The notes: generated by a model from the sequence alone, not told the origin. 30,901 nucleotides of DNA from Macrostomum lignano (GCA_002269645.1 NIVC01001534.1:44135-75035), one strand, 5' to 3'. Shown: positions 14 through 29,148, counted from the stretch's first letter. Numbers and translations: made by a program.

Positions 14-170
14 CGTGGCACAGGCTCTCGTACCTTGCGGACCGAACCTCAGGCGTGGCACAGGCTCTCGCAGGCCTTGCGGACCGAACCTCAGGCGTGG
101 CACAGGCTCTCGTAGCCTTGCGGACCGAACCTCAGGCGTGGCACAGGCTCTGCAGCCTTGGCGCGACCGT
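14..170. repeat. Tandem array B (~41 bp unit) in the LTR-element leader
   Basis: CGTGGCACAGGCTC recurs at 14, 54, 96 and 137 (periods 40, 42, 41). Unit is approximately CGTGGCACAGGCTCTCG(N)CCTTGCGGACCGAACCTCAGG. Confidence 0.9.
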
Positions 171-189
171 CAGGCAGAAACGTGGCAGC

Positions 190-487
190 CGGCACTCAGT
201 CACGAGCCGGCAGAGCTGAGCAGAATCTTGCTGACGCTTGTTGCGAGCTGGCAGGCTGAGCAGAATCTCGCTGACGCTTGGTTGCGAGCTGGCAGGGCTG
301 AGCAGAAGTCTTGATGGCGCTTGCTTGTGTGCTGGCAGCGCTGAGCAAGAGTCTCGGTGGCACTGATTACGAGTTGGCAGCGCTGAGTAGACGTCTCGGT
401 GGTGCTTAGTTTCGAACGTGTTGATGTTGAGCAGAATCTCAGTGGCGCTTAGTTGCGAACCGGCAGTGCTGAGCTTGGTCTCGGTGG
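190..487. repeat. Degenerate tandem array A (~42 bp unit, 7 copies) ending in the PBS
   Basis: G(C/T)TGAG anchors at 215, 255, 297, 340, 382, 426 and 468 (periods 40-44). TCTC(G/A)GTGG occurs at 352, 394, 437 and 479. Confidence 0.85.
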
Positions 488-5147: not shown

Positions 5148-5498
5148 GTGATTGCCTTTGACGAGCTGCAAAATGATTACAAGAATCCCATTGACCAGTG
5201 TCGCAGCCTTAACTCCCTAGTGCTGCCAGAGTACATTGTGCACGCCCTAATGTCACTAATGTTCTTGTTCAGCGGCCAGTTGTTTTCATTCATACTGAAC
5301 CTGCCGCTAGCTGCCTACCATGTGAAACGGTACATAGACAGGCCTGTGCTGAGCTCGCCAGGCCTATACGACCCCACCAGCATCATGAATGCCGACAAGT
5401 TGCGAAGGGCAATGCGCGAAGGCTGGGTTAAATTGGCCATCTATCTGTGCTCATTTTTCTACTATCTCTACTGCATGATCTATGTGCTGGTGTCGTGA
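5148..5498 (+). CDS. CNIH: Cornichon homolog, coding exon 2 (ER cargo receptor; 143 aa in total)
   Basis: CAG acceptor at 5145-5147, then VIAFDELQNDYKNPIDQC...LVLPEY...GLYDPTSIMNAD...EGWVKLAIYLCSFFYYLYCMIYVLVS*. These are hallmark cornichon motifs. Confidence 0.96.
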   Translation: MIAFDELQNDYKNPIDQCRSLNSLVLPEYIVHALMSLMFLFSGQLFSFILNLPLAAYHVKRYIDRPVLSSPGLYDPTSIMNADKLRRAMREGWVKLAIYLCSFFYYLYCMIYVLVS

Positions 5499-10162: not shown

Positions 10163-10241
10163 ATGACAAACGGTCGAATTTCCAAGGTTACTACAGGATA
10201 CCTGCTCATGATCTGCGTTTGCTTGGTCGCAATGATGTTCG
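10163..10241 (+). CDS. Receptor exon 1: signal peptide MTNGRISKVTTGYLLMICVCLVAMMF
   Basis: Basic n-region plus hydrophobic h-region. GTAGGT donor at 10242 (phase 1) joins exon 2 in frame (G+TC = Val, then ANPEAA). Confidence 0.75.
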
Positions 10242-13200
10242 GTAGGTTTAGTGCAGCTGTTTGAGTGTTGTAGTTATAGTAATTAAGTGAAAGACTGGTG
10301 ATAACCAAGTCTGGCATCATCAGTCAGTTTCCAACTCAGTCACTCTCCCCGTCAGTCACTCTCCCCCTCAGTCACTCTCCCCGTCAGTCACTCTCCCCGT
10401 CAGTCACTCTCCCCGTCAGTCACTCTCCCCCGTCAGTCACTCTCCCCCTCAGTCACTCTCCCTCTCAGTCACTCTCCCCCTCAGCCACTCTCTCAGCTCA
10501 GTCACTCTCCCCCTCAGTCAGTCTCCCCCTCAGTCACTCTCCCCGTCAGTCACTCCCCCCTCAGTCACTCTCCCCGTCAGTCACTCTCCCTCTCAGTCAC
10601 TCTCCCCCTCAGTCACTCTCCCCGTCAGTCACTCTCCCCCTCAGTCAGTCTCCCCCTCAGTCACTCTCCCCGTCAGTCATTCTCCCCGTCAGTCACTCTC
10701 CCTCTCAGTCACTCTCCCCCTCAGCCACTCTCTCAGCTCAGTCACTCTCCCCCTCAGTCAGTCTCCCCCTCAGCCACTCTCTCAGCTCAGTCACTCCCCC
10801 CCTCAGTCACTCTCCCTCTCAGTCACTCTCCCCCTCAGTCACTCTCCCCGTCAGTCACTCTCCCCCTCAGTCAGTCTCCCCCGTCAGTCACTCTCCCTCT
10901 CAGTCACTCTCCCCCTCAGTCACTCTCCCCGTCAGTCACTCCCCCCCTCAGTCACTCTCCCCGTCAGTCACTCTCCCTCTCAGTCACTCTCCCCCTCAGT
11001 CACTCTCCCCGTCAGTCACTCTCCCCCTCAGTCAGTCTCCCCCTCAGTCACTCTCCCCGTCAATCACTCTCCCCGTCAGTCACTCTCCCCCTCAGTCAGT
11101 CTCCCCCTCAGTCACTCTCCCCGTCAGTCACTCTCCCCGTCAGTCACTCTCCCCCTCAGTCACTCTCCCCGTCAGTCACTCTCCCCGTCAGTCACTCTCC
11201 CCGTCAGTCACTCTCCCCCGTCAGTCACTCTCCCCCTCAGTCACTCTCCCTCTCAGTCACTCTCCCCCTCAGCCACTCTCTCAGCTCAGTCACTCTCCCC
11301 CTCAGTCAGTCTCCCCCTCAGCCACTCTCTCAGCTCAGTCACTCCCCCCCTCAGTCACTCTCCCTCTCAGTCACTCTCCCCCTCAGTCACTCTCCCCGTC
11401 AGTCACTCTCCCCCTCAGTCAGTCTCCCCCGTCAGTCACTCTCCCTCTCAGTCACTCTCCCCCTCAGTCACTCTCCCCGTCAGTCACTCTCCCCCGTCAG
11501 TCACTCTCCCCCTCAGTCACTCTCCCTCTCAGTCACTCTCCCCCTCAGCCACTCTCTCAGCTCAGTCACTCTCCCCCTCAGTCAGTCTCCCCCTCAGTCA
11601 CTCTCCCCGTCAGTCACTCTCCCCGTCAGTCACTCTCCCCCTCAGTCAGTCTCCCCCTCAGTCACTCTCCCCGTCAGTCACTCTCCCCGTCAGTCACTCT
11701 CCCCCTCAGTCACTCTCCCCGTCAGTCACTCTCCCCGTCAGTCACTCTCCCCGTCAGTCACTCTCCCCCGTCAGTCACTCTCCCCCTCAGTCACTCTCCC
11801 TCTCAGTCACTCTCCCCCTCAGCCACTCTCTCAGCTCAGTCACTCTCCCCCTCAGTCAGTCTCCCCCTCAGCCACTCTCTCAGCTCAGTCACTCCCCCCC
11901 TCAGTCACTCTCCCTCTCAGTCACTCTCCCCCTCAGTCACTCTCCCCGTCAGTCACTCTCCCCCTCAGTCAGTCTCCCCCGTCAGTCACTCTCCCCGTCA
12001 GTCACTCTCCCCCTCAGTCACTCTCCCCGTCAGTCATTCTCCCCGTCAGTCACTCTCCCCGTCAGTCACTCTCCCCCTCAGTCACTCTCCCCCTCAGTCA
12101 CTCCCCCTCAGTCACTCTTCCCGCTCAGTCACTCTTCCCGCTCAGTCAGTCTCCCCTCAGTCACTCTCCCCAACAGTCAGTCTCCCCTCAGTCACTCCCC
12201 CTCAGTCACTCTTCCCGCTCAGTCACTCTCCCCCCAGTCAGTCTCCCCGTCAGTCACTCTCCCCGTCAGTCAGTCTCCCCTCAGTCACTCCCCCTCAGTC
12301 ACTCTTCCCGCTCAGTCACTCTCCCCCCAGTCAGTCTCCCCCCCAGTCACTCTCCCCTGAGTCACTCACCATTCAGTCACTCTCACCCCAGTCACTCTCA
12401 CCCCAGTCACTCTCCCACTAATTTCCTGCATCGTTTCTCTCTCACAGTCGCCAACCCCGAAGCGGCCACGATCGTACCGTCCGACGCGAACGCGGTGCCC
12501 TCCGCGCTCCGCTGCCCAGACGGCCGCATTCCGCTGAACAGCCCGCAGGCGCGCTGCCGCTCGCAGCCGCAGCTGCAGTGGGCCGGCAGGCGCTGCGAAA
12601 ATGACAGCCTGGATTTCAGCTGCCCGCACGGATACGACTGTCTAGCGGAGGGCATCTGCTGCGAGCCGCCACAGCTCCCGGTGAGCCGCTGGTCCGTAAT
12701 ATTGTCTGAAACCTCTCAGTCTGACACCTCTCACTCTGACCTCAGTCTGACACCTCTCACTCTGACCTCAGTCTGACACCTCTCACTCTGACCTCAGTCT
12801 GACACCTCTCACTCTGACCTCAGTCTGACACCTATCCCTGTGGTCCTCAGCCTGACACCTCACTCTGGCCTCAGCCTGACACCTCTCCTTCTGGTTTTCA
12901 GTCTGACACCTCTCTGGCCTCAGCCTGACACCTCTCTGGTCCTCAGTCTGACACCTCTCTGGTCCTCAGTCTGACACCTCTCTGGTCCTCAGTCTGACAC
13001 CTCTCTGGTCCTCAGTCTGACATCTCTCTGCTCCTCAGTCTGACACCTCTCTGGTCTTCAGTCTGACACCTCTCACTCTGGCCTCAGTCTGACACCTCTC
13101 ACTCTGGCCTCAGCCTGACACCTCTCCTTCTGGTTTTCAGTCTGACACCTCTCTAGTCCTCAGTCTGACACCTCTCTGGTCCTCAGTCTGACACCTCTCT

Positions 13201-16200
13201 GGTCCTCAGTCTGACACCTCTCTGGTCCTCAGTCTGACACCTCTCTGGTCCTCAGTCTGACACCTCTCTGGTCCTCAGTCTGACACCTCTCTTGTCCTCA
13301 GTCTGACATCTCTCTGGTCCTCAGTCTGACACCTCTCTGGTCCTCAGTCTGACACCTCTCACTCTGGTCCTCAGTCTGACACCTCTCACTCTGCTCCTCA
13401 GTCTGACACCTCTCACTCTGGTCCTCAGTCTGACACCTCTCACTCTGGTCCTCAGTCTGACACCTCTCACTCTGCTCCTCAGTCTGACACCTGAACCTGA
13501 TTCCGCATTGCAGCAGCCGCAGGTGCACCTGTGCCGCATGAGCAGGTCTGGCAGCAAAGCGGTAGACATTGTCGGCAGCTGCTCAGCGAACTCGGACTGC
13601 AAGGGTTACGATAGTCTAGCCAGCAGGTGCTGCAGCGGCAGCTGCGTTCTGCTGAAGCAGCGTAGGTTTTGACAACCGACGGCCTTTTCTAGAAAGATTC
13701 GCTTACAACAATCAACTTTTCAACCAATCAAGAAACGAACCATTCATTTACAGGCTGCTTCAGGCAACGACGCCAATATCAGAGCATTTTGTCCACTGGA
13801 CAGGTGCCGAGAATCTACTTGCCCAAGTGAGTAGAAACTATCCGCTTGGTAACAATTTAGTTCAACTCAAGCAATGCGTGACGCCAATGCCATTGGCGAC
13901 TTAGTAACGCGCGAAGGAACCGCGCGAGCATCTTTCATAGGGTATGGATCGCTGTTTCATTTAGAGAGAGGGGCGCACAAGGGGCGCCAGCACCAGGGGC
14001 GCCAGCACCAGGGGCGCCAGCACCAGGGGCGCCAGCACCAGTAGGACCAGTGGGGGATGTGGCAGCTAAGCTACGAGAGATCCAATAAACGAAATAAAAA
14101 TGCTTCAATTTAGCGTTTTTCTACTAAAAGTAGCTTGCACACGAATGTGCTGAGAGGACAGTCCAGTTGTTTTATGCATCTGCAGGCTAGATAGACAGCC
14201 CTAAAACTAAAGATATTGTCTGCTAAAAACACGAGAGTAGTATCTTTAGCAAATTATCAATAAAATTTAGACTATTTTAATGAACCCAATCACCTTGCCA
14301 AGCTGCACCGACGACGGCGCCTTCGAATCGGTCCAGTGGGAGCCGCGCTTCAACCGGCGCTGGTGCGTCGACCAGCGGACCGGCCTGGCGCTTCGCTCCG
14401 GCTGCTGCCTGGCTGGCAACTCGCGACCTGCGTGCTCGAACCCGCGACCTTGCCCACCCGAGCTGTGCGCCCTGAGCGTCTGTCCGGCCAGACCGGACGC
14501 CGTCTGCAGGGTGAACGTCTGCGGCGACGGCGACTGCCGGGCGGAGTTCTTCGACCCAGCCAGCGGCCAGCCGGTCGACTGCGGCGCCGGGCTGGGCCGC
14601 TGCCGTGCCGGCCAGGCCGCCTACTTCGAGGGCCTGGCCTACCTGCGGGCTCGCGACCAGACCCAGTGGCTGCAGGTGCGAATAGGGGCATTAATTAGAT
14701 TAGATTATGTAGGGGTGTGGTGTGCAGTAGATTGTGTCTATGGTTTTGGAGGCAGACAATGGTAGATTGTGTCTATGGCTTTGCAGTCAGACAATGGTAG
14801 ATTGTGTCTATGGCTTTTCAGTCAGACAATGGTAGATTGTGTCTATGGTTTTGGAGGCAGACAATGGTAGATTGTGTCTATGGTTTAGGAGGCAGACAAT
14901 GGTAGATTGTGTCTATGGTTTTGGAGGCAGACAATGGTAGATTGTGTCTATGGCTTTGCAGTCAGACAATGGTAGATTGTGTCTATGGCTTTTCAGTCAG
15001 ACAATGGTAGATTGTGTCTATGGTTTTGGAGGCAGACAATGGTAGATTGTGTCTATGGTTTAGGAGGCAGACAATGGTAGATTGTGTCTATGGTTTTGGA
15101 GGCAGACAATGGTAGATTGTGTCTATGGTTTTGGAGTCAGACAATGGTAGATTGTGTCTATGGTTTTGGAGGCAGACAATGGTAGATTGTGTCTATGGTT
15201 TTGGAGTCAGACAATGGTAGATTGTGTCTATGGTTTTGGAGGCAGACAATGGTAGATTGTGTCTATGTTTTTAGAGGCAAATGAAAATTCCGCAAAACGG
15301 TTGGTCAAATCTCATTTTCAACAGACTGACGCCATCAACAAGCCGGCCACTTCGGACAGAAACCTGGCCGCCTACATGGACACCTGCGAGCAGGACGAGT
15401 GCAGGGCCTACAGCGCCAGTTTGCTTGAACCAGCTGCCTTCGGTTTCGGCAGCTTTAAAAAAGTATGTTTGCTATCGCACTAAGGTATACACAGGGCATC
15501 CCTATCCCCCAAATGCACGCTCCTGTCCCAGTGTAAGCTACAATCCGTCGTCTATCCAACTAAAACAATTTATGTTGTCAAAACAGGCACCTGCGCCTCC
15601 TGCACTGGTTGCTGGGCAGTTCGACTCCTTGCGGATGACTTAATCCTGCCAGTTCTTGCAAAACCCTTCAATGCTCTCGTCAACAGATTTGCCTCCCATT
15701 AAACAGTTCCAACTCATGCCCACCCGGTTTTTCAGGAAGACTGCCCGAAGCAGAACGACCTGAACTATCACTGCCGAAACAGGTGCAACGCCTTCAGCGG
15801 CTGTCCAACTGAAAGTCAGGTGTGCTGCAACAGCGGCTGTGGCCTCGAGTGCATGTCGCCGGCCGACATTAAGCCGGAGTCGCATTGCTCCATGAGCATT
15901 AGCTCCGGTCACTGTCCGGCGGTTGGCTGCTACCGGATGTGCCGACGCTGGGGCTACGACGTGGCGAAAAAAGTCTGCCGTCCGTTCTGGTACGCCGGCT
16001 CCGGCGGCAACAACAACCGGTACAACTCCTGGGCCGAGTGCGAGTGGATGGCGCAGAACTGCCACGGCCGGGTGCGCATCGCGCTGCCCGTCCGGCCGCT
16101 GTGCAAGCGCCGGACAGGCAATTTTGAAAATGTCCAGGTGTCGGACAATGGCATGTTCTGGTGCGTCGACCGGAACGGTGTGCCGACGCCTGGCACTCTG

Positions 16201-19200
16201 CACGCCGACCATATCGCGTGCACTCGAGACGGTCGGCTGATCATTAATAAGTAAATCCAGTGGGAGAGTTGGGGCATTCTGAAAGAAGTCAACCGTCAAA
16301 TCACAGGATTGATGCACAAGTGTGAGATCGTTCAAAATTTCTCAACTCGCTTACATCAACCTTGCACTCCCACTCCAACTCAGGTACTACCTGAAGGTGG
16401 CCCACCTGTACAAGGCCCGCTGTCCCAACGGAAAGCTGCCAGCCTGGTGTCACAATCGGACCATCGACCGAACATGCGGCAGTCCAGGAGTTGCCACCTT
16501 CGCCGACGCCTGCGACAATTGCAGGCTGGTGCACATCAACGCCAACGGCCAGGAGGTCAGCTGCCAGACCGACTCCGACGTCTGCGCCGCCTCCTCGATC
16601 TCCAGCTCCACCGCCGGCGGCCCGTCCCTGATCGCTTGCAAGTCGATGCCGACAACTCCAAACTTCCGCTACTCCCCCAGCACCGGCCGGTGCTCAGCCG
16701 GCTGCCCGGTCAGCGGAGCCAGTGGCTACTCAAGGGAGGCCGGCTGCCTTAGTGCCTGCGCCCGGGGCTGGTGCGGCAGAAACTCCACAGCCTTCTATCC
16801 GGATCTGTGCGTGAGCCCCGCCTGCCCCAGCTGGCCAGGGGCCCTCTGCGTCCCGGACGAGTGCACCGGCAGCGAGCGTTACTTCCTCCGCAACGGCACC
16901 GAGATTGCTGCCTGCGCCCGTCGGTTGGCCGCTCTGCACCCGAACGACAACTGCAGCAGCTCGGCGACTTCGACAACCACACCGTCTGGAAGAGCTGCGG
17001 ACGCGTCAACGACAAAAACATCAGGAAGAACTGAAGAAACAAAGACTACGCAGTCAGGAGCTGCCGCAGACACAAAGACCACCGCAGCGGAGGGAAGCGG
17101 CGGGGGTGCGCCTTCGACTGTGCCGACCTCGACTGCGCCACCCTCGACTGCGCCACCCTCAACTGCGCCACCCTCGACTGCGCCACCCTCGACTGCGCCA
17201 CCCTCGACTGCGCCACCCTCGACTGCGCCACCCTCGACCCCGATCGCGACTACAACTCCGACCAGCGTAGCGCCAACAACAACGACACCGCCGCCGCCAA
17301 AGAAGATTCTGCCTATCTGCTGGGTCCGGCTCCATCTGGGCGTAGAGAAGATGAAGTGCCGGGTCTCGGACGGCCTCTACGAAGCGAGGCAATGCAACCA
17401 GACTCACTGCTTCTGCGTGGTGTCCGACAACGGCGCCGTGCTCCCGGACCCGAGGCCGGTGCCGTTAGCGCAAGGATCTTCGCTTGCCTGTCGTAAGTTG
17501 AGCTTTCCAAATGGATGTCAACTTGAGCATCAGAATGGAACTCAGACCAAAAACCGACTGCATCGGTCCGACAAGTATTCTTTTGCGGTCGGAGTCTGCG
17601 GAATGAGCAGAAGATCAATTGCCTCACCGCTGGTCGTGAGACGACGCAGCCTTTCTGATAGATATGCATTTCTATTCTGGTGCTTATGTGGACATCCACT
17701 CTGTTAAAAAAGTTGATTTAGTAGCTAAAAACGCGTTATTCATGTCCAATTTCAGCGATTGTGGAGACCACTAACTTGTCAGTTACCATCACGTACGGCG
17801 CTGACTACATGTCTGTGCTGCCGACAATGGAGGACGAAGTGAAAATGCAGCGGTGAGAAAACGGCAACGTCAAACATTGTTTTTATTCTAAAAATAGCCA
17901 ATATCTGTTGTTAACAAAACAGCATGAACTCCAGTGTTTTGTGGTTTGACAGCGTTCAAATCAAGGACGACTTTGCTTCTTAGAAAACGTTTAATGGGCG
18001 GATCGTGAGAAAAAAAGCTACGCTCGTGGTGATAGCTTTTCCTTGGAATTTTCCCCGTATTTTTCTACTCAAATCATCCTTGGTTCAATGTGTGTCACGA
18101 AGGTTACAATGTGCAGTCTCATCCATGCCCATCCTCTAGACACAGAGTGTACATACCGGACGATTAGAAAGTCAGGAGGCCCGCTGTACACCCTGTGAGA
18201 GCGTGTGTATGAGTGCGGGCCTGCGTACAGTATTGGCGCGCTTGTGTGTTCAGGAGCCAGCAGAGTTGGCGTCAGCGCTGGTTGTGGGACGATTTTGCCG
18301 AAGGCGCCAGGGTGCCCGCAGCCCTCCTGCAGTTATTATTATTATTTTAACTGTCTTACTGCCTGCCTGCCCACAGTCACATACCGACCATAACTCCCGC
18401 AGAATCGTGGCCAAGCGATTCGCTTACGAAGGAAATCTTCAGGCGCACCACATCCGCCTCGTTGACCTGGAGCCCGGCAGCATTCTGGTGACCGTCGGTA
18501 TGCAGAAGTCGCCAGGCGATTCGACTGCCGACCTCCCTGCGTCCGCGTTCGAGCTCAAGACAATGGTTGGTTTTGAGGGCTTGGGGCTGTTCAAAAACGA
18601 AGTTAAGCAAAGTTGACCGCGGATAGTACGCGTAGGCTACCTGGGTCACCCTCCTCCGCAATAAACATACCTTTGACCGAGTGGCAAGTCAAACCTGGGC
18701 TTTCGTTCTGAGGTGAGGTAGAAATACAGGTGGGATTTGTGACCCCCCCCACAGTGCCAACGCTGTACAAGCACGAATTTAAGATACACAAATAGCTTGC
18801 ACACAGGAACTACTCAAGTATCGCTTTTGACGATCTAAAAAACGGGACGCCATAGACATTCAAGCCAGGCCACAGATCTCACCCTAGTCATGGACTTAAG
18901 CAGTTTAGCTGAGTCTACTGAGGCAGGCTTGGCCATAGACTATAACTTTGGGCATTCAATATGGGAAAAAGCCATTCAAAACGGGAATCGGACTGAGATT
19001 TTATAGCTCTCAGTCCCTCTCTCCCCTGTTTGCTCGTCGCGTCTTTGGCCTGAAAGCGAACGAATTCAATGGCGCCACCAATTCCTGACGCTCAAGGAGT
19101 TCCGAGTTACTTTTGTTTTGCTTCCGGTAACGGACACTTTGTTCACTTTTAAATATTCCAGTGGCCTTGACATATAAAAATACGTTAAATTGGGCGAATT

Positions 19201-21197
19201 CCCGTTTTGAACGGCTTTTTCCCATTTTTATTGTCAATTCCACATTCTAAGGTTGTGTATTCCCATCCAAGCAGCCCAAGTCTGTGGTCTGGCATGAATG
19301 TCAATGGCGTCCCGTTTTGATTGTCCAAATTCATTCCCGTTTAGATCGTCAAAAGCGATACAAGGACGCTACACTTGATTTTCTTAGAAATAAGCTTGAA
19401 TTGTATGCCGGTATGAGGAACGCATATTTGTGTTTGAAAACTTCGCCATCGACAAAGACGATTATTACTCATACTCGTACTCATACAGTGTACTACTGGC
19501 GATAGGTCGAAAAATACACGTTCCTTACCGGCCTACAGCTCATTTCTAAGAAAAAATCCAGTGTAGCTTAGCTTCCCTCTACTGCATTTTTCCATGTGTG
19601 CAAGCTGTACACTGCAATTGCATGTAATTTACCAATATCTAGGACCGGATATCTCACTTGAAATCTTAATCCAGGCCTTGAAGCAGACTCTGCTAATCGA
19701 CTTCAACGGTGTCACCCTGGCGCCGTCGGCTCGGCAGAGCTTCAACGAGAATTTCGACAGCTCAATTGTAGAGCCGCCGACCGCGGCGCCGCTATTCCGA
19801 GGCAACAGCGACAGCGGCGCCCCGCTGAACGTGGTCGGAATCGTTGTCGGAGTGCTCATCACGGTTGCCGTGGTAGCCGTGGCCGCAGTGCTCATCACGG
19901 TGAGTTGGCCAGTTAAGGCTATTGCTGCTTAGGGTGACCTACTACCTACCCTGCTGCAATTTTACGCTACTCAATACTTTTTGGAGATTGGGACTGGCGC
20001 AGACGCTTAAGGTCTGATGTGTTCAGAAATTCTCAATCAAAGAATGCGGGGTTAGATCGAGGGCCTCCCTCAAGCAAAGGATGCGGGGTTAGAGGCCGTC
20101 CTTCAATCAAAGGATGCGGGGTTAGATCGAGGGCCTCCCTCAAGCAAAGGATGCGGGGTTAGATCGAGGGCCTCCCTCAAGCAAAGGATGCGAGGTTAGA
20201 GGCCCTCCCTCAAGCAAAGGATGCGAGGTTAGAGGCCCTCCCTCAAGCAAAGGATGCGAGGTTAGAGGCCCTCCCTCAAGCAAAGGATGCGGGGTTAGAG
20301 GCCCTCCTTCAATCAAAGGATGCGAGGTTAGAGGCCCTCCCTCAAGCAAAGGATGCGGGGTTAGAGGCCCTCCTTCAATCAAAGGATGCGGGGTTAGAGG
20401 CCCTCCCTCAATCAAAGGATGCGGGGTTAGAGGCCCTCCCTCAATCAAAGAATGCGGGGTTAGAGGCCCTCCCTCAATCAAAGGATGCGGGGTTAGAGGC
20501 CCTCCCTCAATCAAAGGATGCGGGGTTAGAGGCCCTCCCTCAATCAAAGAATGCGGGGTTAGAGGCCCTCCCTCAATCAAAGAATGCGGGGTTAGAGGCC
20601 CTCCCTCAATCAAAGGATGCGGGGTTAGAGGCCCTCCCTCAATCAAAGAATGCGGGGTTAGAGGCCCTCCCTCAATCAAAGGATGCGGGGTTAGAGGCCC
20701 TCCCTCAATCAAAGGATGCGGGGTTAGAGGCCCTCCCTCAATCAAAGAATGCGGGGTTAGAGGCCCTCCCTCAATCAAAGAATGCGGGGTTAGAGGGCCA
20801 CAGAGCCTTTTGGTCGCTTTATTTTTACATCAGTCGCGTGGTTTGACTTCTCATACATTTGATGGCGGTATGATTGCGAGGGAGCCTTTGATTCAACAAT
20901 CGGTCTTGGTAATCGCTTGGATTTAATATCCAGCTGCACCACATATTTGAGAGTATATAGCTAACTATTTGATTTTATAACCGTACCCCCGTGCAACAGT
21001 TCGCTTTGCGCAGACGCGCCCAGTCCGGAAGCCCCGCTCTGCCACACGAGTCCGGCAACTACGAGACCATGTCGAATGCCAGCCATTCAACTGCTGGCGG
21101 CGGCGTAGCCTACGACAATTTCGCTAACAAGGTGTACGGCCCCATGGAGGACGATGTGTACGATAACATCGCCCAGCCAGCCATGTCCGATGCTTAA
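10163..21197 (+). CDS. 12-exon gene for a ~1116-aa type I membrane multidomain protein (SP, Lustrin-like, WAP, thyroglobulin-1 x3-4, Kunitz-like x2, mucin, SEA-like, TM, Tyr tail)
   Basis: Exons: 10163-10241, 12448-12680, 13514-13661, 13754-13826, 14303-14675, 15325-15462, 15736-16250, 16384-17492, 17756-17852, 18403-18565, 19675-19899, 21000-21197. All introns are GT-AG, phases 1,0,1,2,0,0,2,1,2,0,0 all match, and the total is 3351 nt = 1116 aa + stop. The exon 6/7 junction is the least secure. Confidence 0.8.
10321..12418. repeat. ~2.1 kb CT-rich minisatellite in intron 1 (unit TCAGTCACTCTCCCC(C/G), ~16-18 bp)
   Basis: Direct reading; roughly 125 copies (estimated from length). Confidence 0.97.
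12448..12680 (+). CDS. Receptor exon 2: Lustrin/WR1-like cysteine-rich repeat
   Basis: TCACAG acceptor; CPDGRIP...C...C...CPHGYDCLAEGICC; GTGAGC donor. Confidence 0.8.
12705..13491. repeat. Minisatellite in intron 2 (23/26 bp unit TCTGACACCTCTC(ACT)CTG(G/A)(T/C)CCTCAG-like)
   Basis: Direct reading; about 30 copies. Confidence 0.97.
13514..13661 (+). CDS. Receptor exon 3: truncated WAP-like module
   Basis: TTGCAG acceptor (NAGNAG, with a further in-frame AG at 13522); C...CSANSDCKG...RCCSGSC; GTAGGT donor. Confidence 0.75.
13754..13826 (+). CDS. Receptor exon 4: start of a thyroglobulin type-1 domain (CFRQRRQY...IYLP)
   Basis: TTTACAG acceptor and GTGAGT donor; phases 1 and 2 fit the neighbouring exons. 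Confidence 0.8.
13980..14039. repeat. (AGGGGCGCCAGCACC)4 in intron 4
   Basis: Four perfect 15-bp copies. Confidence 0.95.
14303..14675 (+). CDS. Receptor exon 5: Tg-1 core (CTDDGAF..Q..WCVD..G) plus unnamed Cys module
   Basis: AAG acceptor; NCTDDGAFESVQWEPRFNRRWCVDQRTG; GTGCGA donor. Confidence 0.85.
14727..15279. repeat. 35-bp minisatellite, 16 copies, in intron 5
   Basis: Unit GTAGATTGTGTCTATGGTTTTGGAGGCAGACAATG with five recurring variants. Confidence 0.97.
15325..15462 (+). CDS. Receptor exon 6: degenerate Tg-1-like segment (AAYMDTCEQDEC)
   Basis: TTTTCAACAG acceptor, GC3-rich frame, GTATGT donor. Confidence 0.7.
15736..16250 (+). CDS. Receptor exon 7: WAP domain, divergent Kunitz domain and Tg-1 domain
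   Basis: TTTTTCAG acceptor. WAP: CP..C..C..C..CC..GCG..C.SP (8 Cys). Kunitz: RWGYD....C..F.Y.GSGGN.NRY.S..EC. Tg-1: PLC...GNF...Q...WCVDRNG.P.PGT. GTAAAT donor. Confidence 0.88.
16384..17492 (+). CDS. Receptor exon 8: Cys modules, degenerate Kunitz, Ser/Thr/Pro mucin stalk and six-Cys Tg-1 domain
   Basis: CTCAG acceptor; FRYSPSTGRC..GC..SGYS..GCLSAC; (STAPP)7; C..KC...GLYEARQCNQTHCFCV...G...C; GTAAGT donor. Confidence 0.88.
17129..17233 (+). repeat. Coding VNTR (TCGACTGCGCCACCC)7 = (STAPP)7
   Basis: In frame within exon 8. Confidence 0.95.
17756..17852 (+). CDS. Receptor exon 9: N-terminal part of an SEA-like domain
   Basis: TTTCAG acceptor; PIVETTNLSVTITYGADYMSVLPTMEDEVKMQR; GTGAGA donor. 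Not shown in the ORF track. Confidence 0.75.
18403..18565 (+). CDS. Receptor exon 10: SEA-like domain with PGSILV motif
   Basis: CCGCAG acceptor; HIRLVDLEPGSILVTV; GTTGGT donor. Confidence 0.75.
18821..19358. mobile_element. 538-bp MITE in intron 10 with long TIRs and TA target duplication (Tc1/mariner-like)
   Basis: The left end TCGCTTTTGACGATCTAAA-AAACGGGACGCCATAGACATTCAAGCCAGGCCACAGA is the reverse complement of the right end, apart from a 22-bp insert and 3 mismatches. TA lies at 18819-20 and 19359-60. Confidence 0.85.
19675..19899 (+). CDS. Receptor exon 11: juxtamembrane region and transmembrane helix
   Basis: ATCCAG acceptor; VVGIVVGVLITVAVVAVAAVLIT; GTGAGT donor. Confidence 0.85.
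20032..20798. repeat. 33-bp minisatellite, ~23 copies, in intron 11
   Basis: Unit CTCAATCAAAGGATGCGGGGTTAGAGGCCCTCC with variants. Confidence 0.97.
21000..21197 (+). CDS. Receptor exon 12: stop-transfer signal and cytoplasmic tail with four Tyr motifs
   Basis: CAACAG acceptor; FALRRR...NYETM...AYDNF...VYGPM...VYDNI...*. Confidence 0.82.
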   Translation, partial: FALRRRAQSGSPALPHESGNYETMSNASHSTAGGGVAYDNFANKVYGPMEDDVYDNIAQPAMSDA

Positions 21198-22608
21198 TTT
21201 AAGCGAGAATTGAGATGTAAAATTGGACACTACTGAATCAAGCGTACACAAGAGACATTGTTACTAGCTCGTACTACTGCATGGATTGCAAAAGGATCTA
21301 TTTTTAATTCATTTCACTCGCTCTAGAAAAGGAAAAAGAAATTGTGGTGAATCTTGAGTGGAGCTGACACTATATATTAGAGTTTTGATGGCGCACCTGC
21401 CCATGGGTATCTTTGTATTGATGAGGTGGCACTGATTGGTCGATCTAACCTGCAGTGCAAAGTACGTGTCGCGTGCAACTAAAGTAGGACGCTAAACGCA
21501 ATCCGTGCGAATTTCCGTTTTCTAGCACAAATTTGTCAATACCGGAATTCCAAATTAAGCAAGCATGTGTTGTGTCCGAGGTGCGCTCACAAGTTTAGCA
21601 ACCTGTTTTTACCATGCAATAAAGCAAAAGTTCCGGCGGAACCTCAGCTACTCTTGTCTCTTTTGCTCGAACGAATGTGTCTATGGCAACACCTCATTTG
21701 CAGAAAAAGCAAATCCCTGCGAAATCCGTTTAGAACGCGCAACTGGGTTTTGAGTATTGCCGCTCTCCAACAATATTTTTTTCTATCTCTTGCTTCACAA
21801 GCTTGTGAGCTTGATTCGGAGATCGGTGAGGCATTGGGAATTTTACGATTTGCGATACATGCACTTTAGTTGGTCATGGTCTAGAGATTTAGAAGCTCCG
21901 TTCTTAATTCCCGTCTTTTTGGATCCTTTTATAATTAGCTTTCACCAGAATCAAAATTTTTTGTAATAATGGAAGTTTTTAACCAGTCGCCATTTATATT
22001 TGAAACCAAATCAATGCGTCATTCCATTTGCAATCTTCGAATATTTATTGGTGAAAATTACCAGTTACTCTTTTTTTATACAATGCCTTATCCAAGAAAA
22101 AGATGCGCTTTTTATTTAAAGCTAAGTTTTGTATATTTAGTTGGCAGTTGGCACCAAACAGGAAATAAGCTTGTTAGGCTTAAATTTTTTACGTTTGTTT
22201 TTTTATCACCGCTGCACAAAACAGTGTTATTATTTCCGGTGTGAACTAATTAAGTAGCTAAATATGGAACGAGCCTTGTTGTTTCTTATTTTTGAGATTG
22301 AGGTAAAATTAATGAATATAATAAATAGTCGACTACATTTTTGTTAAACTCCACTGACCCCAACTCACACCTTTAAATAAACTCTTATTGTTTAAAAATT
22401 CAAATCAATTTCAAAACAAGCAGTTTTGTTATAAACGCATTTAGAATAATAACCAGTGATATTTTCAAGCTACTATAGTATGACCGATCAATTGCATGAG
22501 TACAGAGTAATGTTTCACAACATGCACACACAGTTTAGTTTCAAATTTAAACCCCAATTGAGAGTCAAGCAAGGATTTAATCAAAGCCAAAAGTTCAGTC
22601 AACGCCAG

Positions 22609-22707
22609 CTACTGCTGCTTGAAGAAGGACGACTGCGATTGGCCGAAGAAGCCGGACTGCTTGCTGGCCGAGCGGGACGGCGCAAAGCCGAGAAGTTTTT
22701 GAACGTT
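22609..22707 (-). CDS. TMCO1: TMCO1, coding exon 2 (NVQKLLGFAPSRSASKQSGFFGQSQSSFFKQQ*); 186 aa in total
   Basis: TTTGCAG acceptor after a 112-nt intron. Matches the human C-terminus NIQKILGLAPSRAATKQ. Not shown in the ORF track. Confidence 0.93.
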   Translation of the reverse strand, partial: NVQKLLGFAPSRSASKQSGFFGQSQSSFFKQQ

Positions 22708-22819
22708 CTGCAAATTTTAAACGTTGATGCAGCATAATGGCTTTTTTTCAATGTCGCATGCAAATGATTCAATTTTGTTAACGTTTATAAGGTTGGATTT
22801 AGATCTAATTTGCACTCAC

Positions 22820-23281
22820 CTGTCGCACGGACATGGTGCAGATGACGTACAAGAAAGTGAAGGAGCAGTCGCTATAGTCCTCTCCTAGGAGGTTCCGATG
22901 CGAGATGCCCTGCAGAAGGGACACTGGCACAAATGGCAGCTTGGCAACCACTCGCCCGTCAAAAATAGAGTTAAACATGGAGAACAGCGCCGTGAACACT
23001 AAGAATATTGCCAGCATAGATTTCATGTTAACAAAAGACAAGTCGCGATTGAAGCTTTTCAATCTTTCCTCCTGTTTCTCCAGCTTGCGCTTGGCACTCT
23101 TGTCGCTAAGATCGGCGGCGCTGGTGTCTTTGCGCTTCTCCAGCCGGCGGCTCTGCTTATCAACTTCATCTCGGAGCTTTTTATACTTCTCGGTGCGATA
23201 GACCAGAAGCCAGGTGAGGCCTTCGCCTAAGAAAGCTGTGAACACGGCCACAAACAGAATTACTAGGGTGGACTCCAGCAT
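22820..23281 (-). CDS. TMCO1: TMCO1 (Oxa1-superfamily ER membrane protein), coding exon 1
   Basis: EGLTWLLVYRTEKYKKL...FNSIFDGRVVAKLPFVP...SHRNLLGED..DCSF.FLY..CTMS.RQ; GTGAGT donor at 22819. Confidence 0.96.
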
Positions 23282-25563: not shown

Positions 25564-28500
25564 TTAGCTATTCATGACTTCATATATTTTAGCTACACCA
25601 GTGAGCTCTTTTCTGACTCTTTTTTCATTTGTAGCATATCCTAACTTGTGTACTTGCTTGTCATTTAGGAGGTACTGACAGAAGTATTTTTTTCTGAACT
25701 TTTCGGTTTGTGGACATTCGGTCAAGTAGTGTAGGATATCGGAACCATTTCTCGCTCCACACAGTCTACATGGTTCATGAGAGAAAATGTTGGGTGTAAT
25801 TTCGCATTTCAGTTTTAGGAGGGTTGTTAGGAATTTTTTGTTTCTAAAAGTGCATGGAAAGTAATCTGAAAGGTCAGGCCTGCAGATTTTTTTGTAGAGA
25901 TAGGCGTTTTTATAGAGTTTAATATGTTGCTGATTCTCTAGCTTTTGGCTAAGTTCTCTTTCTCTGTGTATCTTGAGGTGCTTTTTCACTAGGTATTTCT
26001 CGTTATTAAAGCTTTGGGAAAGTTTATCTTCAGTTAGTGCTTTTAAGTCTATACTTTCCAGTTTCTTTAGTATATTTGTTTTCCATGGATTTTTTTGGCT
26101 GGTGTTTGAGTAGAAAATTTCTAGTGTCGTTTGGCAAAGTTTTTGATGTCTAATCTTCAGCCAGTAGGTAAGATAGGTTTTAGCAATTCGTTGGGAGATT
26201 GGAGTAAGCTCAAGTTCTGATGATATCACACTGTTGCTAGCAAATTTTGGTAGATTGAGGAGATATTTGTAGAATTTCAGCTGAATGTTATCAATAGCTT
26301 TTGTTTCAGAAATGGTAGCCAGAGGGCCCCAGAGCTCACAGCCGTACGTGATAACGGGGGTGACAAGCGCGTCGAATAGTCTGCGAATGAGTGTGATGTC
26401 CAGGGACGTATTTTTTACCTTGTGGAGTAGGGAAAACATAGCTGAATAACCCTGCTTAGTTTGATGTTCAATACATTTTTTAAAGCTGTTTTTTGGTTCA
26501 AAAATAATTCCCAGGTATTTAAATTCATTTACTTCCTCTATTTCTTGGTTGTCGTAGATTATTTTTGTAGCAAAACTTTCTGTGTCATTTTTTTGTCTGG
26601 TACTGCCCTGCATAAACTTTGTTTTGCTTGCATTAACTTTCAAGTAGTTTTGCTTGCAGTAATTTTCCATAGTTGTAAATGTGTCTTGAAGTTCATCTTT
26701 GTTTTTAGCTAGAATGGCTTGATCGTCCGCAAAGAGCAGGATGAGTGGGAAAGCAGATCTCGTAAGAGAGCGCCTAGCGCTAGAGAGTTCAAGATATTCA
26801 ACAATGTCGTCAATATATAGTTCAAAAAGGATGGTAGAGAGAGGGTTACCTTGAAGAACACCTTTAGATATTGGGATTGGCTGGGTTTCATCATCATCAT
26901 CATCTTTCTTTAGAATGAAACAGGCATTTTTATGCATGTTCTTGATAAGTTCTGTCATTTGACCTTTAATACCTTGGTTATCCGTTTTGTGCCAAAGGGT
27001 CGGTTGATTTAAGCTATCGAAGGCTTTTTCATAGTCAACAAAACCGATAAAGAGTTCATTTTTGTTGTAGATGGACTGGTTTATAATGTTGTAAAGATTA
27101 AAACATTGGTCGATTGTGCTGTGATTGGGCTTGAAACCGTATTGGTATTTTGATATAAGATTGTTAGCGTATGCTAGGTTTTCAAGTCTGGATTTAATAA
27201 TTTGGCAAAAGAGCTTGCCAAAAATTGGTTGAATGCAGATTCCTCTGTAATTGTTGGGGTCGGCACTGCTGCCTTTGTTTTTATAAATCGGATGAAGAGT
27301 ATTTGTAATCCAACTAGTTGGAAAGGTTCCTTGTTTGAGTGCTTCGTTGAAAAGTGAGCATAGGAGGTCAGTAAGTTCGTTTTCAAGGTATTTGAGTGTT
27401 TCTACATATACTTTATCATGCCCAGGTGCTTTGTCGGTTTTGAGCTTTTTAATATGTTTTATAACTTCTTCTTTGGTGAATGGGGCATTGAAATCCTCTA
27501 AATTAGTCAGAATAGGGTTGTCAAGGTGAAGATTGTATGCTAGTCTAATGCTGCTGTCTTGTTCAGTTACAAGATTTTGAAAGTGTATGACAAATTTTTC
27601 GTCAATTGCTGCATTGTTATTGGGGCGGTTATGTGGTTTCAGTAATTGCCAAAGCTGTCTTGTATCATTTTGAATATAAGCCTGGTTGATCATGTTTTCT
27701 GCACACAGTATTGATTCATGTTTCCAAGAAATCAAGCTTTTTTCATATGTTTTTTTAAGCTGTATTTTGGATGCGAGGTTGCTACTTGTGGGGAACATCT
27801 TATATCTTCTGCTGGCATGCCTGGTGGCATTTCTCAGGTCTTTAAGAAATTGTGGCAATGCTGAACAGAGAGGGTTTTTTGTTTCTACTGTGATTTTACT
27901 TTGGATTTGCTGAACTTTCTTGCTTAAATTATGGATGAAAGCTGGGTTTTGCATGTCGAGATTTGGGATTTTATTCTCCAGATCCTTTAGATCATCTGAG
28001 AAGCAATTGATATGTTTTTCTTGTTGTGGGGTGGGTTTATCTAGTTTTCTTAATATCCGGAATTTTGTTCTTTGGTTATTGGTTGCTTGTTTTGTTTCTG
28101 TAATCTCTGCTGTGAATTTACATGATAATGAGAGTATAATTTGATTGTGGTCACTAAGGTAAGTATGGTTTCTTACTTTAAAGTCTTCAAAGTGCTCAAG
28201 TAAGTTGCTAGAGACAAAACAGAGGTCAATTACAGATGAACCAGTTTTGGAGATAAAGGTAAGTGTTCCAGTTGCATCAGATAGGGATCTACCATTGATT
28301 ATATGCAAGTTATATGAGTTTGTGATTTGGTTTAATAATCTACCACTTTTACAGGTTTTTTTGTCTTGGCTTTGCCTATAGAGTGAGATATTTTTTGCCT
28401 TTAAAGTGCTTATTCTATGCAAATCTATATGATCAGTATTGTAAGTATGTGCATTAAAATCTCCCACCAGGATTATGTTTTCTTCAGAATGATGTGCATC

Positions 28501-29148
28501 AAGTATTAGTGCTAACTGTTCCCAAGACTCTTCTTCATAGTATTTTGAAGATGTTGGTGGTATGTAAGAGTTGATAACAGTGAAATTTTTGCTTTTGTCC
28601 TTTTTGTTTTTAAAGTTTAATGTCAAAAAATTGTTGTAATTATTGAATGACTCAGTCACATTGAAATGTGTTTCTAGTGATTTTTTATAAGCAGTCAGTA
28701 GGCCGCCAGATGCCCTACCAGTAGAACTGCTTCCTTTTTTGTTTGCAGACTTTTGGAAAATTGTGTAGTTGTCACGCAATTTGTCAGTGCTGAGAAGCCT
28801 ATCATTGCTTTTTGTGTCAATTATCCAAGTTTCTTGAAGGCAGAAAATATCATGCTTAAAAATTGGTTCAGCTTCTAACAATTCAAGCTTGGGAATCATC
28901 ACTGAGTCTTTTATAGTATAAAGTCCTGTAATATTCCAACTGCTAATTGTGAAATTTTGTTTAATCTTTTTAATATTGAGTTCAGAGAGTTTTGATTTAG
29001 TATTTTGAGATATTTTTATGTTCCTATGAGTGATACTATTATTAATCAAGATAAGATAATCTCTAGTGTACTGAATCCGCTTCTTTTTAGTCCTATTAGC
29101 ATCAGTAGATTTATTAATACATCTAGTATCAAAAAGGTCGGAAGTCAA
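25564..29148 (-). CDS. LINE ORF2: apurinic endonuclease, reverse transcriptase and C-terminal CCHC knuckle (1194 codons, uninterrupted)
   Basis: EN motifs SWN, CLQETW, NSYIPP, GDFNAH, IDLCF, SDH. RT motifs APGHD, NYRGI, QYGF, FVDYEKAFDS, GVLQGNPLS..LF, FADD, KYLG. Knuckle CRLC-x9-H-x4-C. Confidence 0.96.
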   Translation of the reverse strand: MTSDLFDTRCINKSTDANRTKKKRIQYTRDYLILINNSITHRNIKISQNTKSKLSELNIKKIKQNFTISSWNITGLYTIKDSVMIPKLELLEAEPIFKHDIFCLQETWIIDTKSNDRLLSTDKLRDNYTIFQKSANKKGSSSTGRASGGLLTAYKKSLETHFNVTESFNNYNNFLTLNFKNKKDKSKNFTVINSYIPPTSSKYYEEESWEQLALILDAHHSEENIILVGDFNAHTYNTDHIDLHRISTLKAKNISLYRQSQDKKTCKSGRLLNQITNSYNLHIINGRSLSDATGTLTFISKTGSSVIDLCFVSSNLLEHFEDFKVRNHTYLSDHNQIILSLSCKFTAEITETKQATNNQRTKFRILRKLDKPTPQQEKHINCFSDDLKDLENKIPNLDMQNPAFIHNLSKKVQQIQSKITVETKNPLCSALPQFLKDLRNATRHASRRYKMFPTSSNLASKIQLKKTYEKSLISWKHESILCAENMINQAYIQNDTRQLWQLLKPHNRPNNNAAIDEKFVIHFQNLVTEQDSSIRLAYNLHLDNPILTNLEDFNAPFTKEEVIKHIKKLKTDKAPGHDKVYVETLKYLENELTDLLCSLFNEALKQGTFPTSWITNTLHPIYKNKGSSADPNNYRGICIQPIFGKLFCQIIKSRLENLAYANNLISKYQYGFKPNHSTIDQCFNLYNIINQSIYNKNELFIGFVDYEKAFDSLNQPTLWHKTDNQGIKGQMTELIKNMHKNACFILKKDDDDDETQPIPISKGVLQGNPLSTILFELYIDDIVEYLELSSARRSLTRSAFPLILLFADDQAILAKNKDELQDTFTTMENYCKQNYLKVNASKTKFMQGSTRQKNDTESFATKIIYDNQEIEEVNEFKYLGIIFEPKNSFKKCIEHQTKQGYSAMFSLLHKVKNTSLDITLIRRLFDALVTPVITYGCELWGPLATISETKAIDNIQLKFYKYLLNLPKFASNSVISSELELTPISQRIAKTYLTYWLKIRHQKLCQTTLEIFYSNTSQKNPWKTNILKKLESIDLKALTEDKLSQSFNNEKYLVKKHLKIHRERELSQKLENQQHIKLYKNAYLYKKICRPDLSDYFPCTFRNKKFLTTLLKLKCEITPNIFSHEPCRLCGARNGSDILHYLTECPQTEKFRKKYFCQYLLNDKQVHKLGYATNEKRVRKELTGVAKIYEVMNS

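Follow-up and report, generated by a model that had tools for sequence, protein, structure and literature searches.

The window analysed here, a 30,901-nucleotide (nt) stretch of the genome of the flatworm Macrostomum lignano (GCA_002269645.1, NIVC01001534.1:44135-75035), holds a real gene of 12 exons for a single protein of 1,116 residues, extending from 10163 to 21197 on the + strand. The ectodomain, with 72 Cys in all, contains about 680 residues of small disulfide-rich modules, among them one Kunitz domain, one borderline WAP domain, two thyroglobulin type-1 (Tg-1) domains and several unassigned Cys modules, followed by a Ser/Thr/Pro-rich stalk, a last Tg-1 domain and a predicted SEA-class domain; a single transmembrane (TM) helix and a tyrosine-rich cytoplasmic tail complete the chain. 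The explanation that we favour, with about even confidence, is that the product is a type I transmembrane mucin which presents inhibitor-type modules on an epithelial surface, is probably self-cleaved in its SEA domain, is shed at the Tg-1–SEA cassette, and employs its tail for uptake, for the recruitment of adaptors, or for both.

The exon structure was obtained by a splice search that, around each of 12 approximate exons, took in every GT or GC donor and every AG acceptor no further than ±45 nt away, the translation being required to equal NCBI protein PAA62775.1 (here P0001) with the repeat length of the window permitted. P0001, a 1,101-residue 'hypothetical protein BOX15_Mlig012180g2', was annotated independently in M. 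lignano and was the best of the three proteins, all from this species, returned by a search with a rough hand-spliced sequence. A single solution reproduced it: all 11 introns are GT-AG, every phase closes, and the coding sequence of 3,351 nt gives 1,116 amino acids (aa) plus a stop codon, the sole difference from P0001 being 15 additional residues in a PSTAP repeat. The coordinates, the 12 exons and the length of about 1,116 residues proposed in an initial annotation of this DNA, made from the sequence alone, thus proved exact. Its remark that the track of open reading frames (ORFs) shows only fragments is equally accurate, as the ORF list by itself gives no more than pieces of the gene. The 73-nt exon 4 is needed, since without it the phases of exons 3 and 5 fail to close; once it is included, the match to the Tg-1 profile begins at profile position 1. 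The gene region is GC-rich (50-63%) between AT-rich flanks, and its introns are dense in minisatellites. Long ORFs found in this region (e.g. 10298-12421; about 690-820 aa) were rejected as non-coding, being stop-free 16-mer minisatellite in intron 1.

Support of a transcript type is available for the C-terminal part. An exhaustive search of representative proteins returned P0004, which matches the C-terminal 291 residues with 59% identity and is encoded on L002, an intronless Logan contig of 1,563 nt from run SRR30276804. Without interruption, its frame, still open at the 5' end, takes in a Cys-rich module (Cys module 3) and a Ser/Thr stalk, then both a Tg-1 domain with six Cys and the SEA-class domain, and last the TM helix and the tail, before a stop codon that is followed by about 235 nt of 3' untranslated region. 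Contig and window protein are colinear, free of insertions or deletions at junctions 8/9, 9/10, 10/11 and 11/12; at these points introns of 263-1,109 nt interrupt the gene in the window. Because of this colinearity over the last four exon junctions, the exon bearing the membrane anchor may be placed in the same mRNA as its neighbours; the possibility, raised in the initial annotation, of transcripts lacking exon 11 and its TM segment finds no counterpart in L002, which carries the TM segment in one frame. We infer that L002 derives from mRNA and represents an orthologue in a related species; M. lignano itself is ruled out as the source, as no such protein is present among its annotated proteins. 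Between the two sequences the proportion of synonymous differences (pS) is near saturation at 0.56-0.76, while that of nonsynonymous differences (pN) is 0.16-0.32 in the folded parts, and the ratio of nonsynonymous to synonymous rates (dN/dS) in the cytoplasmic tail is about 0.13, figures which argue that the C-terminal half is under purifying selection.

The same data bear on whether the model could be an annotation artefact in which at least two adjacent genes are fused, one for a secreted inhibitor and another for an EpCAM-like membrane protein, something we regard as highly improbable. It is true that junctions 1 to 7 are without direct M. lignano cDNA, and that two other models of the locus disagree: P0002 has a frameshift in the stalk and runs on at its C-terminus, while P0003 is fragmentary. 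However, exon 8 (16384..17492; aa 520-890) is without a start codon plus signal peptide, and it opens in phase 2, the phase in which exon 7 ends only 133 nt upstream. Furthermore, the single, 5'-open frame of L002 contains Cys module 3 together with the TM helix and the tail, and three NCBI accessions, for loci g2, g5 and g6, agree on identical or near-identical 1,101-aa models. On these grounds (the phase of exon 8 and its want of a signal peptide, the continuity of L002, the three concordant accessions) the two-gene reading was rejected. The extra C-terminus of P0002 (...QRQLLLLEEGRLRLAEE.GLLAGRAGRRKAEKFLN...) corresponds to an ORF at about 22456-22737 (+), 1.3 kb past the stop codon and beside a TMCO1-like gene, and was taken as run-on annotation and not as a genuine alternative exon.

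Exon 1 (10163..10241), which ends in phase 1 and equals the N-terminus of P0001, provides the start codon and a putative signal peptide (MTNGRISKVTTGYLLMICVCLVAMMF...), read by inspection as a basic n-region and a hydrophobic core of 16 residues. In the ectodomain that follows, the most firmly recognised modules are the Tg-1 domains, the Pfam profile Thyroglobulin_1 (PF00086) matching three stretches of the full-length protein with a total of 74.4 bits (E-value 4.9e-21). The first is divided between exon 4 (13754..13826), which encodes its N-terminal half (aa 155-178), and exon 5 (14303..14675), which encodes the remainder; its core reads RWCV, and the paired loss of two Cys (QC to QW, CWCV to RWCV) assigns it by inspection to type 1B. 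The second (aa 470-510; core FWCV) retains only 3 Cys, the QC/CWC pair having gone and the first Cys being missing, and gave an E-value of 3.1e-7 when scanned as a fragment. The third (aa 833-889; core CFCV), encoded by exon 8, possesses all six Cys and is by inspection of type 1A. Tg-1 domains can inhibit papain-like cathepsins.

Exon 7 (15736..16250) encodes, upstream of the second Tg-1 domain, a WAP domain (aa 351-390) and a Kunitz domain (aa 399-456). The latter is recognised by Pfam (PF00014; cut-off 21 bits) with 35.4 bits and an E-value of 1.2e-8 in the full-length protein, or 39.1 bits and 8.5e-10 in a fragment scan, and its matches among PDB sequences, down to an E-value of 4.5e-7, include the Kunitz domains of HAI-1 and APP. 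HMMER alignments to APPI, collagen VI α3 and boophilin equate Cys413 with BPTI Cys14, and the P1 residue would then be Tyr414 (codon 15931-15933), compatible with chymotrypsin-like targets. The WAP assignment is borderline: eight Cys lie in WAP spacing, including CC-x3-C-x3-C, Nawaprin is matched among PDB sequences with an E-value of 0.11, and UniRef names both P0002 and P0003 'WAP domain-containing'.

Other parts of the ectodomain resist classification. The initial annotation had listed, besides the WAP, Kunitz and three Tg-1 domains, the mucin stalk, a SEA-like domain, the TM helix and the Tyr-rich tail, all of which stand, four further elements for which statistical support is lacking. The 7-Cys module of exon 2 (12448..12680; aa 49-98), called Lustrin-like, has no match in Pfam or among PDB sequences, the label reflecting a Cys pattern only (CP.G...CP.GY.C....CC). 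The same searches were negative for the 6-Cys module of exon 3 (13514..13661; aa 111-149), called WAP-like, whose similarity to the protein's own WAP domain is not significant (z-score 1.2). They were negative, too, for the supposed Tg-1 remnant of exon 6 (15325..15462), a 46-aa linker with 2 Cys which is present in P0001 and has a z-score of about 0 against the protein's Tg-1 domains, and for the supposed Kunitz remnant of exon 8, which has no significant similarity to the protein's Kunitz domain. Cys modules 1 (exon 5, aa 228-271), 2 and 3 (both exon 8) likewise have no match in Pfam or among PDB sequences and no family assignment. Modules 1 and 3, the only significant pair, are repeats of each other (z-score 4.9, with none of 500 shuffles scoring as high). 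The best PDB profile match of the Cys modules, kalata B1 at an E-value of 0.08, was taken as chance.

Between Cys module 3 and the third Tg-1 domain lies the stalk (aa 706-826), about 120 residues long and 63% Ser, Thr and Pro. Within it a coding 15-nt repeat for PSTAP (17114-17238, +, exon 8) is present in 8.3 copies, three units above P0001. The number of PSTAP units thus varies between the window and the NCBI model, and human MUC1 likewise has a variable-number repeat. L002 conserves exon 8 from Cys module 3 to its end.

The third Tg-1 domain ends at Cys889 and the SEA-class domain begins with the very next residue, Pro890. Structure prediction with AlphaFold2 (AF2) from the single sequence of Tg-1, SEA and TM segments gave a confidence (predicted local distance difference test, pLDDT) of 41, and that model was not used. 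A second model was based on a 13-row alignment including a distant family found by profile search (P0006 and P0008-P0017), ORFs of about 200 aa on eukaryotic contigs whose common features are the SEA-class domain, the motif GSIIV and a TM helix, with an acidic poly-Asp linker as well. Most of the core here has a pLDDT of 74-86, with a fall to 60-68 at model residues 51-80 (β2, hairpin and β3), and the predicted topology is β-α-β-β-α-β (strands 9-19, 55-61, 65-72 and 100-107; helices 30-47 and 81-94). By this model exon 9 (17756..17852), colinear in L002, encodes β1 and the beginning of α1; exon 10 (18403..18565) continues with α1-β2-β3-α2; and exon 11 (19675..19899), 68% identical in L002, supplies the end of the domain, an 18-aa linker and nearly the whole TM helix. 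A β-α-β-β-α-β sandwich is thereby predicted to end just 18 residues before the membrane. The sequence P-G-S falls exactly at the predicted β2-β3 hairpin, and G947-S948-I-L-V (codons 18476-18490) has the form GSφφφ, the autoproteolytic motif of SEA domains (PMC7349879), so that cleavage is predicted at this point. The pattern GS[IL][IL]V is conserved: the window protein has it, as do, in the form GSIIV, both L002 and the P0006 family.

When the model was compared with the PDB by Foldseek, the C-domains of TROP2 and EpCAM filled the first 11 ranks with the exception of rank 4, which was dystroglycan. These matches had probabilities of 0.99-1.00, E-values of 4.7e-3 to 2.1e-2 and TM-scores of 0.41-0.47, the last normalised to a query that included the TM helix and a disordered linker. 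Of the Tg-1 domain the query included no more than the five final residues, so that the match does not depend on Tg-1. Lower in the list were thyroglobulin, SorCS2, MUC16 SEA5 (E-value 0.16), TRADD-N and IA-2. The EpCAM C-domain itself belongs to the SEA group, while being without the GSφφφ motif (PMC7349879). The predicted topology, the structural matches and the location of the motif together support the description 'SEA-like' of the initial annotation, and the succession of a type 1A Tg-1, a SEA-class domain and a TM helix is best read as a cassette of EpCAM/Trop2 type, by which a predicted fold class and an architecture are meant and not membership of the family.

As to the distant family, the ORF of P0008 (L001, 8001-8603) is seemingly the last exon of a larger gene, and ORFs upstream of it (1206-2024) have weak matches to the REJ domain. 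Weak Pfam matches to TRADD-like_N were seen in 8 of the 13 aligned SEA-class sequences, with a best E-value of 6.3e-6. P0006 has an E-value of 0.34 to EPCAM-Trop-2_C.

The TM helix spans aa 1029-1052 (AF2 pLDDT 82-86) and is followed on the cytoplasmic side by RRR. With the signal-peptide-like N-terminus and the tail, this single helix bears out the type I topology proposed at the outset. Exon 12 (21000..21197) encodes the last TM residue, a tail of 64 residues and the stop codon. Four tyrosine motifs are found in the tail, all on the + strand: YETM (21060-21071), YDNF (21111-21122), YGPM (21135-21146) and YDNI (21159-21170); in L002 the corresponding sequences are YEIM, YDNF, YAPI and YDNI. 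YxxΦ is a sorting signal for AP-2 (through μ2), while pYxN and pYxxM are SH2 consensus sequences of Grb2 and p85 type, respectively. In these terms the tail has four YxxΦ out of four, all kept in L002, two pYxN and one or two pYxxM; the spacing of immunoreceptor tyrosine-based activation or inhibition motifs is absent.

Such a tail raises the alternative, in our view rather unlikely, of a receptor for endocytic scavenging or sorting, in which the four YxxΦ sequences would act not as phosphorylation sites but as AP-2/AP-3 signals by which captured proteases would reach lysosomes; in a variant, Tg-1 and Kunitz domains would themselves be delivered to endolysosomes in order to restrain cathepsins, as does the Tg-1 domain of CD74 p41, an inhibitor of cathepsin L. 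Consistent with this, YxxΦ fits every tyrosine in both sequences, the third motif (YGPM in the window, YAPI in L002) keeps YxxΦ and loses the YxxM consensus, and the dN/dS of the tail implies strong constraint. On the other hand, YDNF and YDNI are invariant and are also Grb2-type pYxN sequences, and mucin stalks, like SEA domains, typically belong to proteins that reside stably on the apical surface.

Among known systems, several resemble this protein in part. HAI-1/SPINT1, HAI-2/SPINT2 and APP/APLP2 are likewise type I membrane proteins with Kunitz domains at the cell surface, but those domains have the canonical six Cys with Arg or Lys at P1, are accompanied by other accessory domains (MANSC and LDLa in HAI-1), and are joined to no WAP, Tg-1, mucin stalk or SEA. 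WFIKKN, eppin, papilin, MLT-11 and SMOC/testican combine WAP, Kunitz and/or Tg-1 in one chain, but are secreted, having neither TM helix nor cytoplasmic tail. The initial annotation, in presenting the known multi-inhibitor proteins as secreted, overlooked those that are anchored in membranes, namely HAI-1/SPINT1, HAI-2/SPINT2, APP and CD74 p41; it also missed both the EpCAM/Trop2 cassette and the layout of SEA domain, mucin and Tyr-rich tail seen in MUC1. CD74 p41 is membrane-anchored, with a Tg-1 that inhibits cathepsin L (a role mentioned in PMC7349879) and endosomal sorting signals, but it is a type II protein with one Tg-1 and an otherwise different architecture and function.

With EpCAM and TROP2 (the GA733 family) the window protein has in common a six-Cys Tg-1 leading into a disulfide-free SEA-class α/β domain, a single TM helix and a tail; the predicted C-domain fold agrees, with the Tg-1 directly before it and the TM helix after. 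In an assay of shedding, a SEA or SEA-like domain together with its neighbouring domain behaved as a proteolytic switch, the response of Trop2 being moderate (PMC6586460). The differences are that about 830 residues of inhibitor-type modules and mucin stalk stand in place of the N-domain, that GSφφφ is present where EpCAM is without it (PMC7349879), and that the tail is longer and Tyr-rich. Neither EPCAM-Trop-2_C nor EpCAM_N of Pfam is matched, and there is no small N-domain. Since sequence matches are missing and a mucin stalk replaces the N-domain, the protein is not filed as a member of the family: the likeness is one of fold and domain order, which does not imply common descent. With MUC1-type mucins it shares a Ser/Thr/Pro stalk of variable repeat number, a juxtamembrane SEA-class domain having G↓Sφφφ at the predicted β2-β3 turn, one TM helix and a tail with multiple tyrosines, in both cases of YxxM and YxN type. 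It differs in that its SEA-class domain has no Pfam SEA match, MUC16 SEA5 being a weak structural match only, and its stalk is short, whereas MUC1 is without inhibitor modules. Nor has MUC1 a structured domain beside its SEA (PMC6586460).

The initial annotation knew of no named protein with this architecture, and this holds in protein searches. Among 5.8 billion proteins (with E-values up to 10 admitted in one of the searches) and, exhaustively, 1.84 billion representatives, none outside Macrostomum had more than one module in common with the window protein, and no secreted multi-inhibitor mosaic was among the multi-domain matches in the 5.8-billion-protein searches. Judged from these sequences, the combination of modules is so far confined to Macrostomum, its components and principles (membrane-anchored inhibitors, SEA mucins, the EpCAM cassette) being already familiar.

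The mechanism that we propose for a shed, inhibitor-presenting mucin would begin in the endoplasmic reticulum, where the SEA domain would cut itself between G947 and S948, as in MUC1, to leave a non-covalent heterodimer. The stalk would keep the inhibitor-type modules above the epithelial surface, there to bind or inhibit extracellular proteases, the Kunitz domain with its P1 Tyr being directed to chymotrypsin-like enzymes and the Tg-1 domains to papain-like cathepsins. Force or proteolytic cutting might then act on the Tg-1–SEA cassette, which in EpCAM/Trop2 forms the proteolytic-switch unit, and so release the outer subunit, after which the tail could bring about endocytosis through AP-2 (YxxΦ) and/or recruit SH2 adaptors (YxxM and YxN types). 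The earlier idea, that trapping or sensing of proteases is coupled to phosphotyrosine signalling, is a reasonable hypothesis; yet the Kunitz domain is atypical, the Tg-1 of EpCAM is not inhibitory (PMC7349879), and all four tyrosines also fit the endocytic YxxΦ.

A number of observations weigh against the proposed mechanism. Two of the three Tg-1 domains are truncated or short of Cys pairs. The Kunitz domain departs from the canonical six-Cys pattern (disulfides 5-55, 14-38 and 30-51), having 7 Cys, with Ser437 at the position of Cys38 and the extra Cys408 and Cys417 flanking the reactive loop. Natural Kunitz domains without the 14-38 bond exist, so that the fold call stands, but canonical inhibition is uncertain. 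The 7 Cys here and the 3 of the second Tg-1 domain would leave room for an inter-domain disulfide. The WAP profile (PF00095) scores 21.2 bits against a cut-off of 20.8 (E-value 3.5e-4), in the fragment scan only, and is not listed for the full-length protein. For the SEA-class domain, no Foldseek E-value is 0.001 or lower and the TM-scores quoted derive from a model of medium confidence; the Pfam SEA profile (PF01390) matches neither the window protein nor any of 13 family members at E-values up to 5, and the window protein is not matched by EPCAM-Trop-2_C. Smith-Waterman comparisons are not significant with either MUC1 SEA (z-score 1.2) or the EpCAM C-domain (z-score 1.8). HHalign, the results of which count as leads only, gave a 25% probability over 25 columns around the motif for MUC1 SEA and nothing for the EpCAM C-domain. 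Among PDB sequences, neither the C-terminal region nor the alignment profile, used as queries, found anything relevant or any EpCAM/Trop2 chain. For exons 1-7 the support consists of the database gene models, and literature searches (locus tag; Macrostomum with Kunitz) found no paper on the gene. Finally, the Tg-1 domain of EpCAM is a protease substrate and not an inhibitor, a thyropin being characterised by a short helix and short loops that permit entry to the active-site cleft (PMC7349879).

Several of these points would also suit a possible, though less than probable, role as an adhesion, junction or glycocalyx protein, whose Kunitz, WAP and Tg-1 domains would be degenerate and would serve for binding or as structural parts, much as does the Kunitz domain in collagen VI α3 or Tg-1 in EpCAM and nidogen. 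Its role would then resemble that of EpCAM/Trop2 or of a barrier mucin (surface organisation, lubrication, protection), with shedding as turnover. EpCAM and TROP2 are, after all, the best structural matches, and collagen VI α3 C5, a domain not known to us as an inhibitor, is among the best sequence matches of the Kunitz domain. The Kunitz domain has lost Cys38 and gained Cys, the Tg-1 of EpCAM does not inhibit (PMC7349879), and four putative modules are too degenerate for recognition. Yet three inhibitor-type folds in one chain form the pattern of a multi-inhibitor protein, the Kunitz core and a plausible P1 (Tyr) are kept, the WAP domain retains 8 of 8 Cys, and neither an EpCAM N-domain nor any sequence-level relation to EpCAM is present. 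Should the modules not be inhibitory, the protein would be a lineage-specific mosaic surface mucin.

A more far-reaching idea, to which we attach little probability, is that the gene preserves, outside vertebrates, a Tg-1–SEA–TM switch of EpCAM/Trop2 type that still has its SEA self-cleavage motif. The GA733 family, described only in vertebrates, would thereby gain a relative or a form resembling its ancestor, in which the protein's own inhibitor array gates protease access to the shedding site, making a self-guarded protease sensor that is read out through the tyrosine tail. Quite apart from this idea, if the protein works by the mechanism favoured above, membrane-anchored inhibition (HAI-1/2), mucin/SEA shedding (MUC1) and the EpCAM/Trop2 switch would be joined in one chain. 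The stability of mammalian EpCAM depends on the membrane inhibitor HAI-2. It depends also on matriptase (PMC7349879), and a flatworm fusion of both sides would be a compact model of the matriptase/HAI-2/EpCAM circuit. The gene also offers a point of comparison outside vertebrates for the question of how the EpCAM family arose. M. lignano is amenable to RNA interference and in situ hybridisation.

Elsewhere in the window, a 116-aa ORF upstream of the mucin gene (5148-5498, +) matches positions 23-122 of the Cornichon profile (PF03311) with an E-value of 4.3e-37 and probably represents the final exon of a gene for a cornichon/CNIH cargo receptor. Just downstream, on the opposite strand, a 158-aa ORF (22805-23281, -) matches EMC3/TMCO1-like (PF01956; E-value 1.7e-38), indicative of a TMCO1-type gene. 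An intact ORF of 1,194 aa in an AT-rich stretch (25564-29148, -) contains an endonuclease/exonuclease/phosphatase domain and a reverse transcriptase domain (RVT_1, with an E-value of 1.5e-30) and looks like a LINE-type retrotransposon (long interspersed nuclear element, lacking long terminal repeats), possibly still active. Minisatellites fill much of 4 of the 11 introns, at 10320-12416 (a 16-mer, 131 copies), 12715-13492 (23-mer, 32 copies), 14727-15279 (35-mer, 16 copies) and 20032-20796 (33-mer, 23 copies); the first is stop-free in all three + frames, while the last gives a false 212-aa ORF on the - strand. A strong skew of C over G is seen at 10-13 kb, and the start of the window (14-474, +; 55% GC) is made up of 42/43-nt tandem repeats in double units of 83/85 nt.

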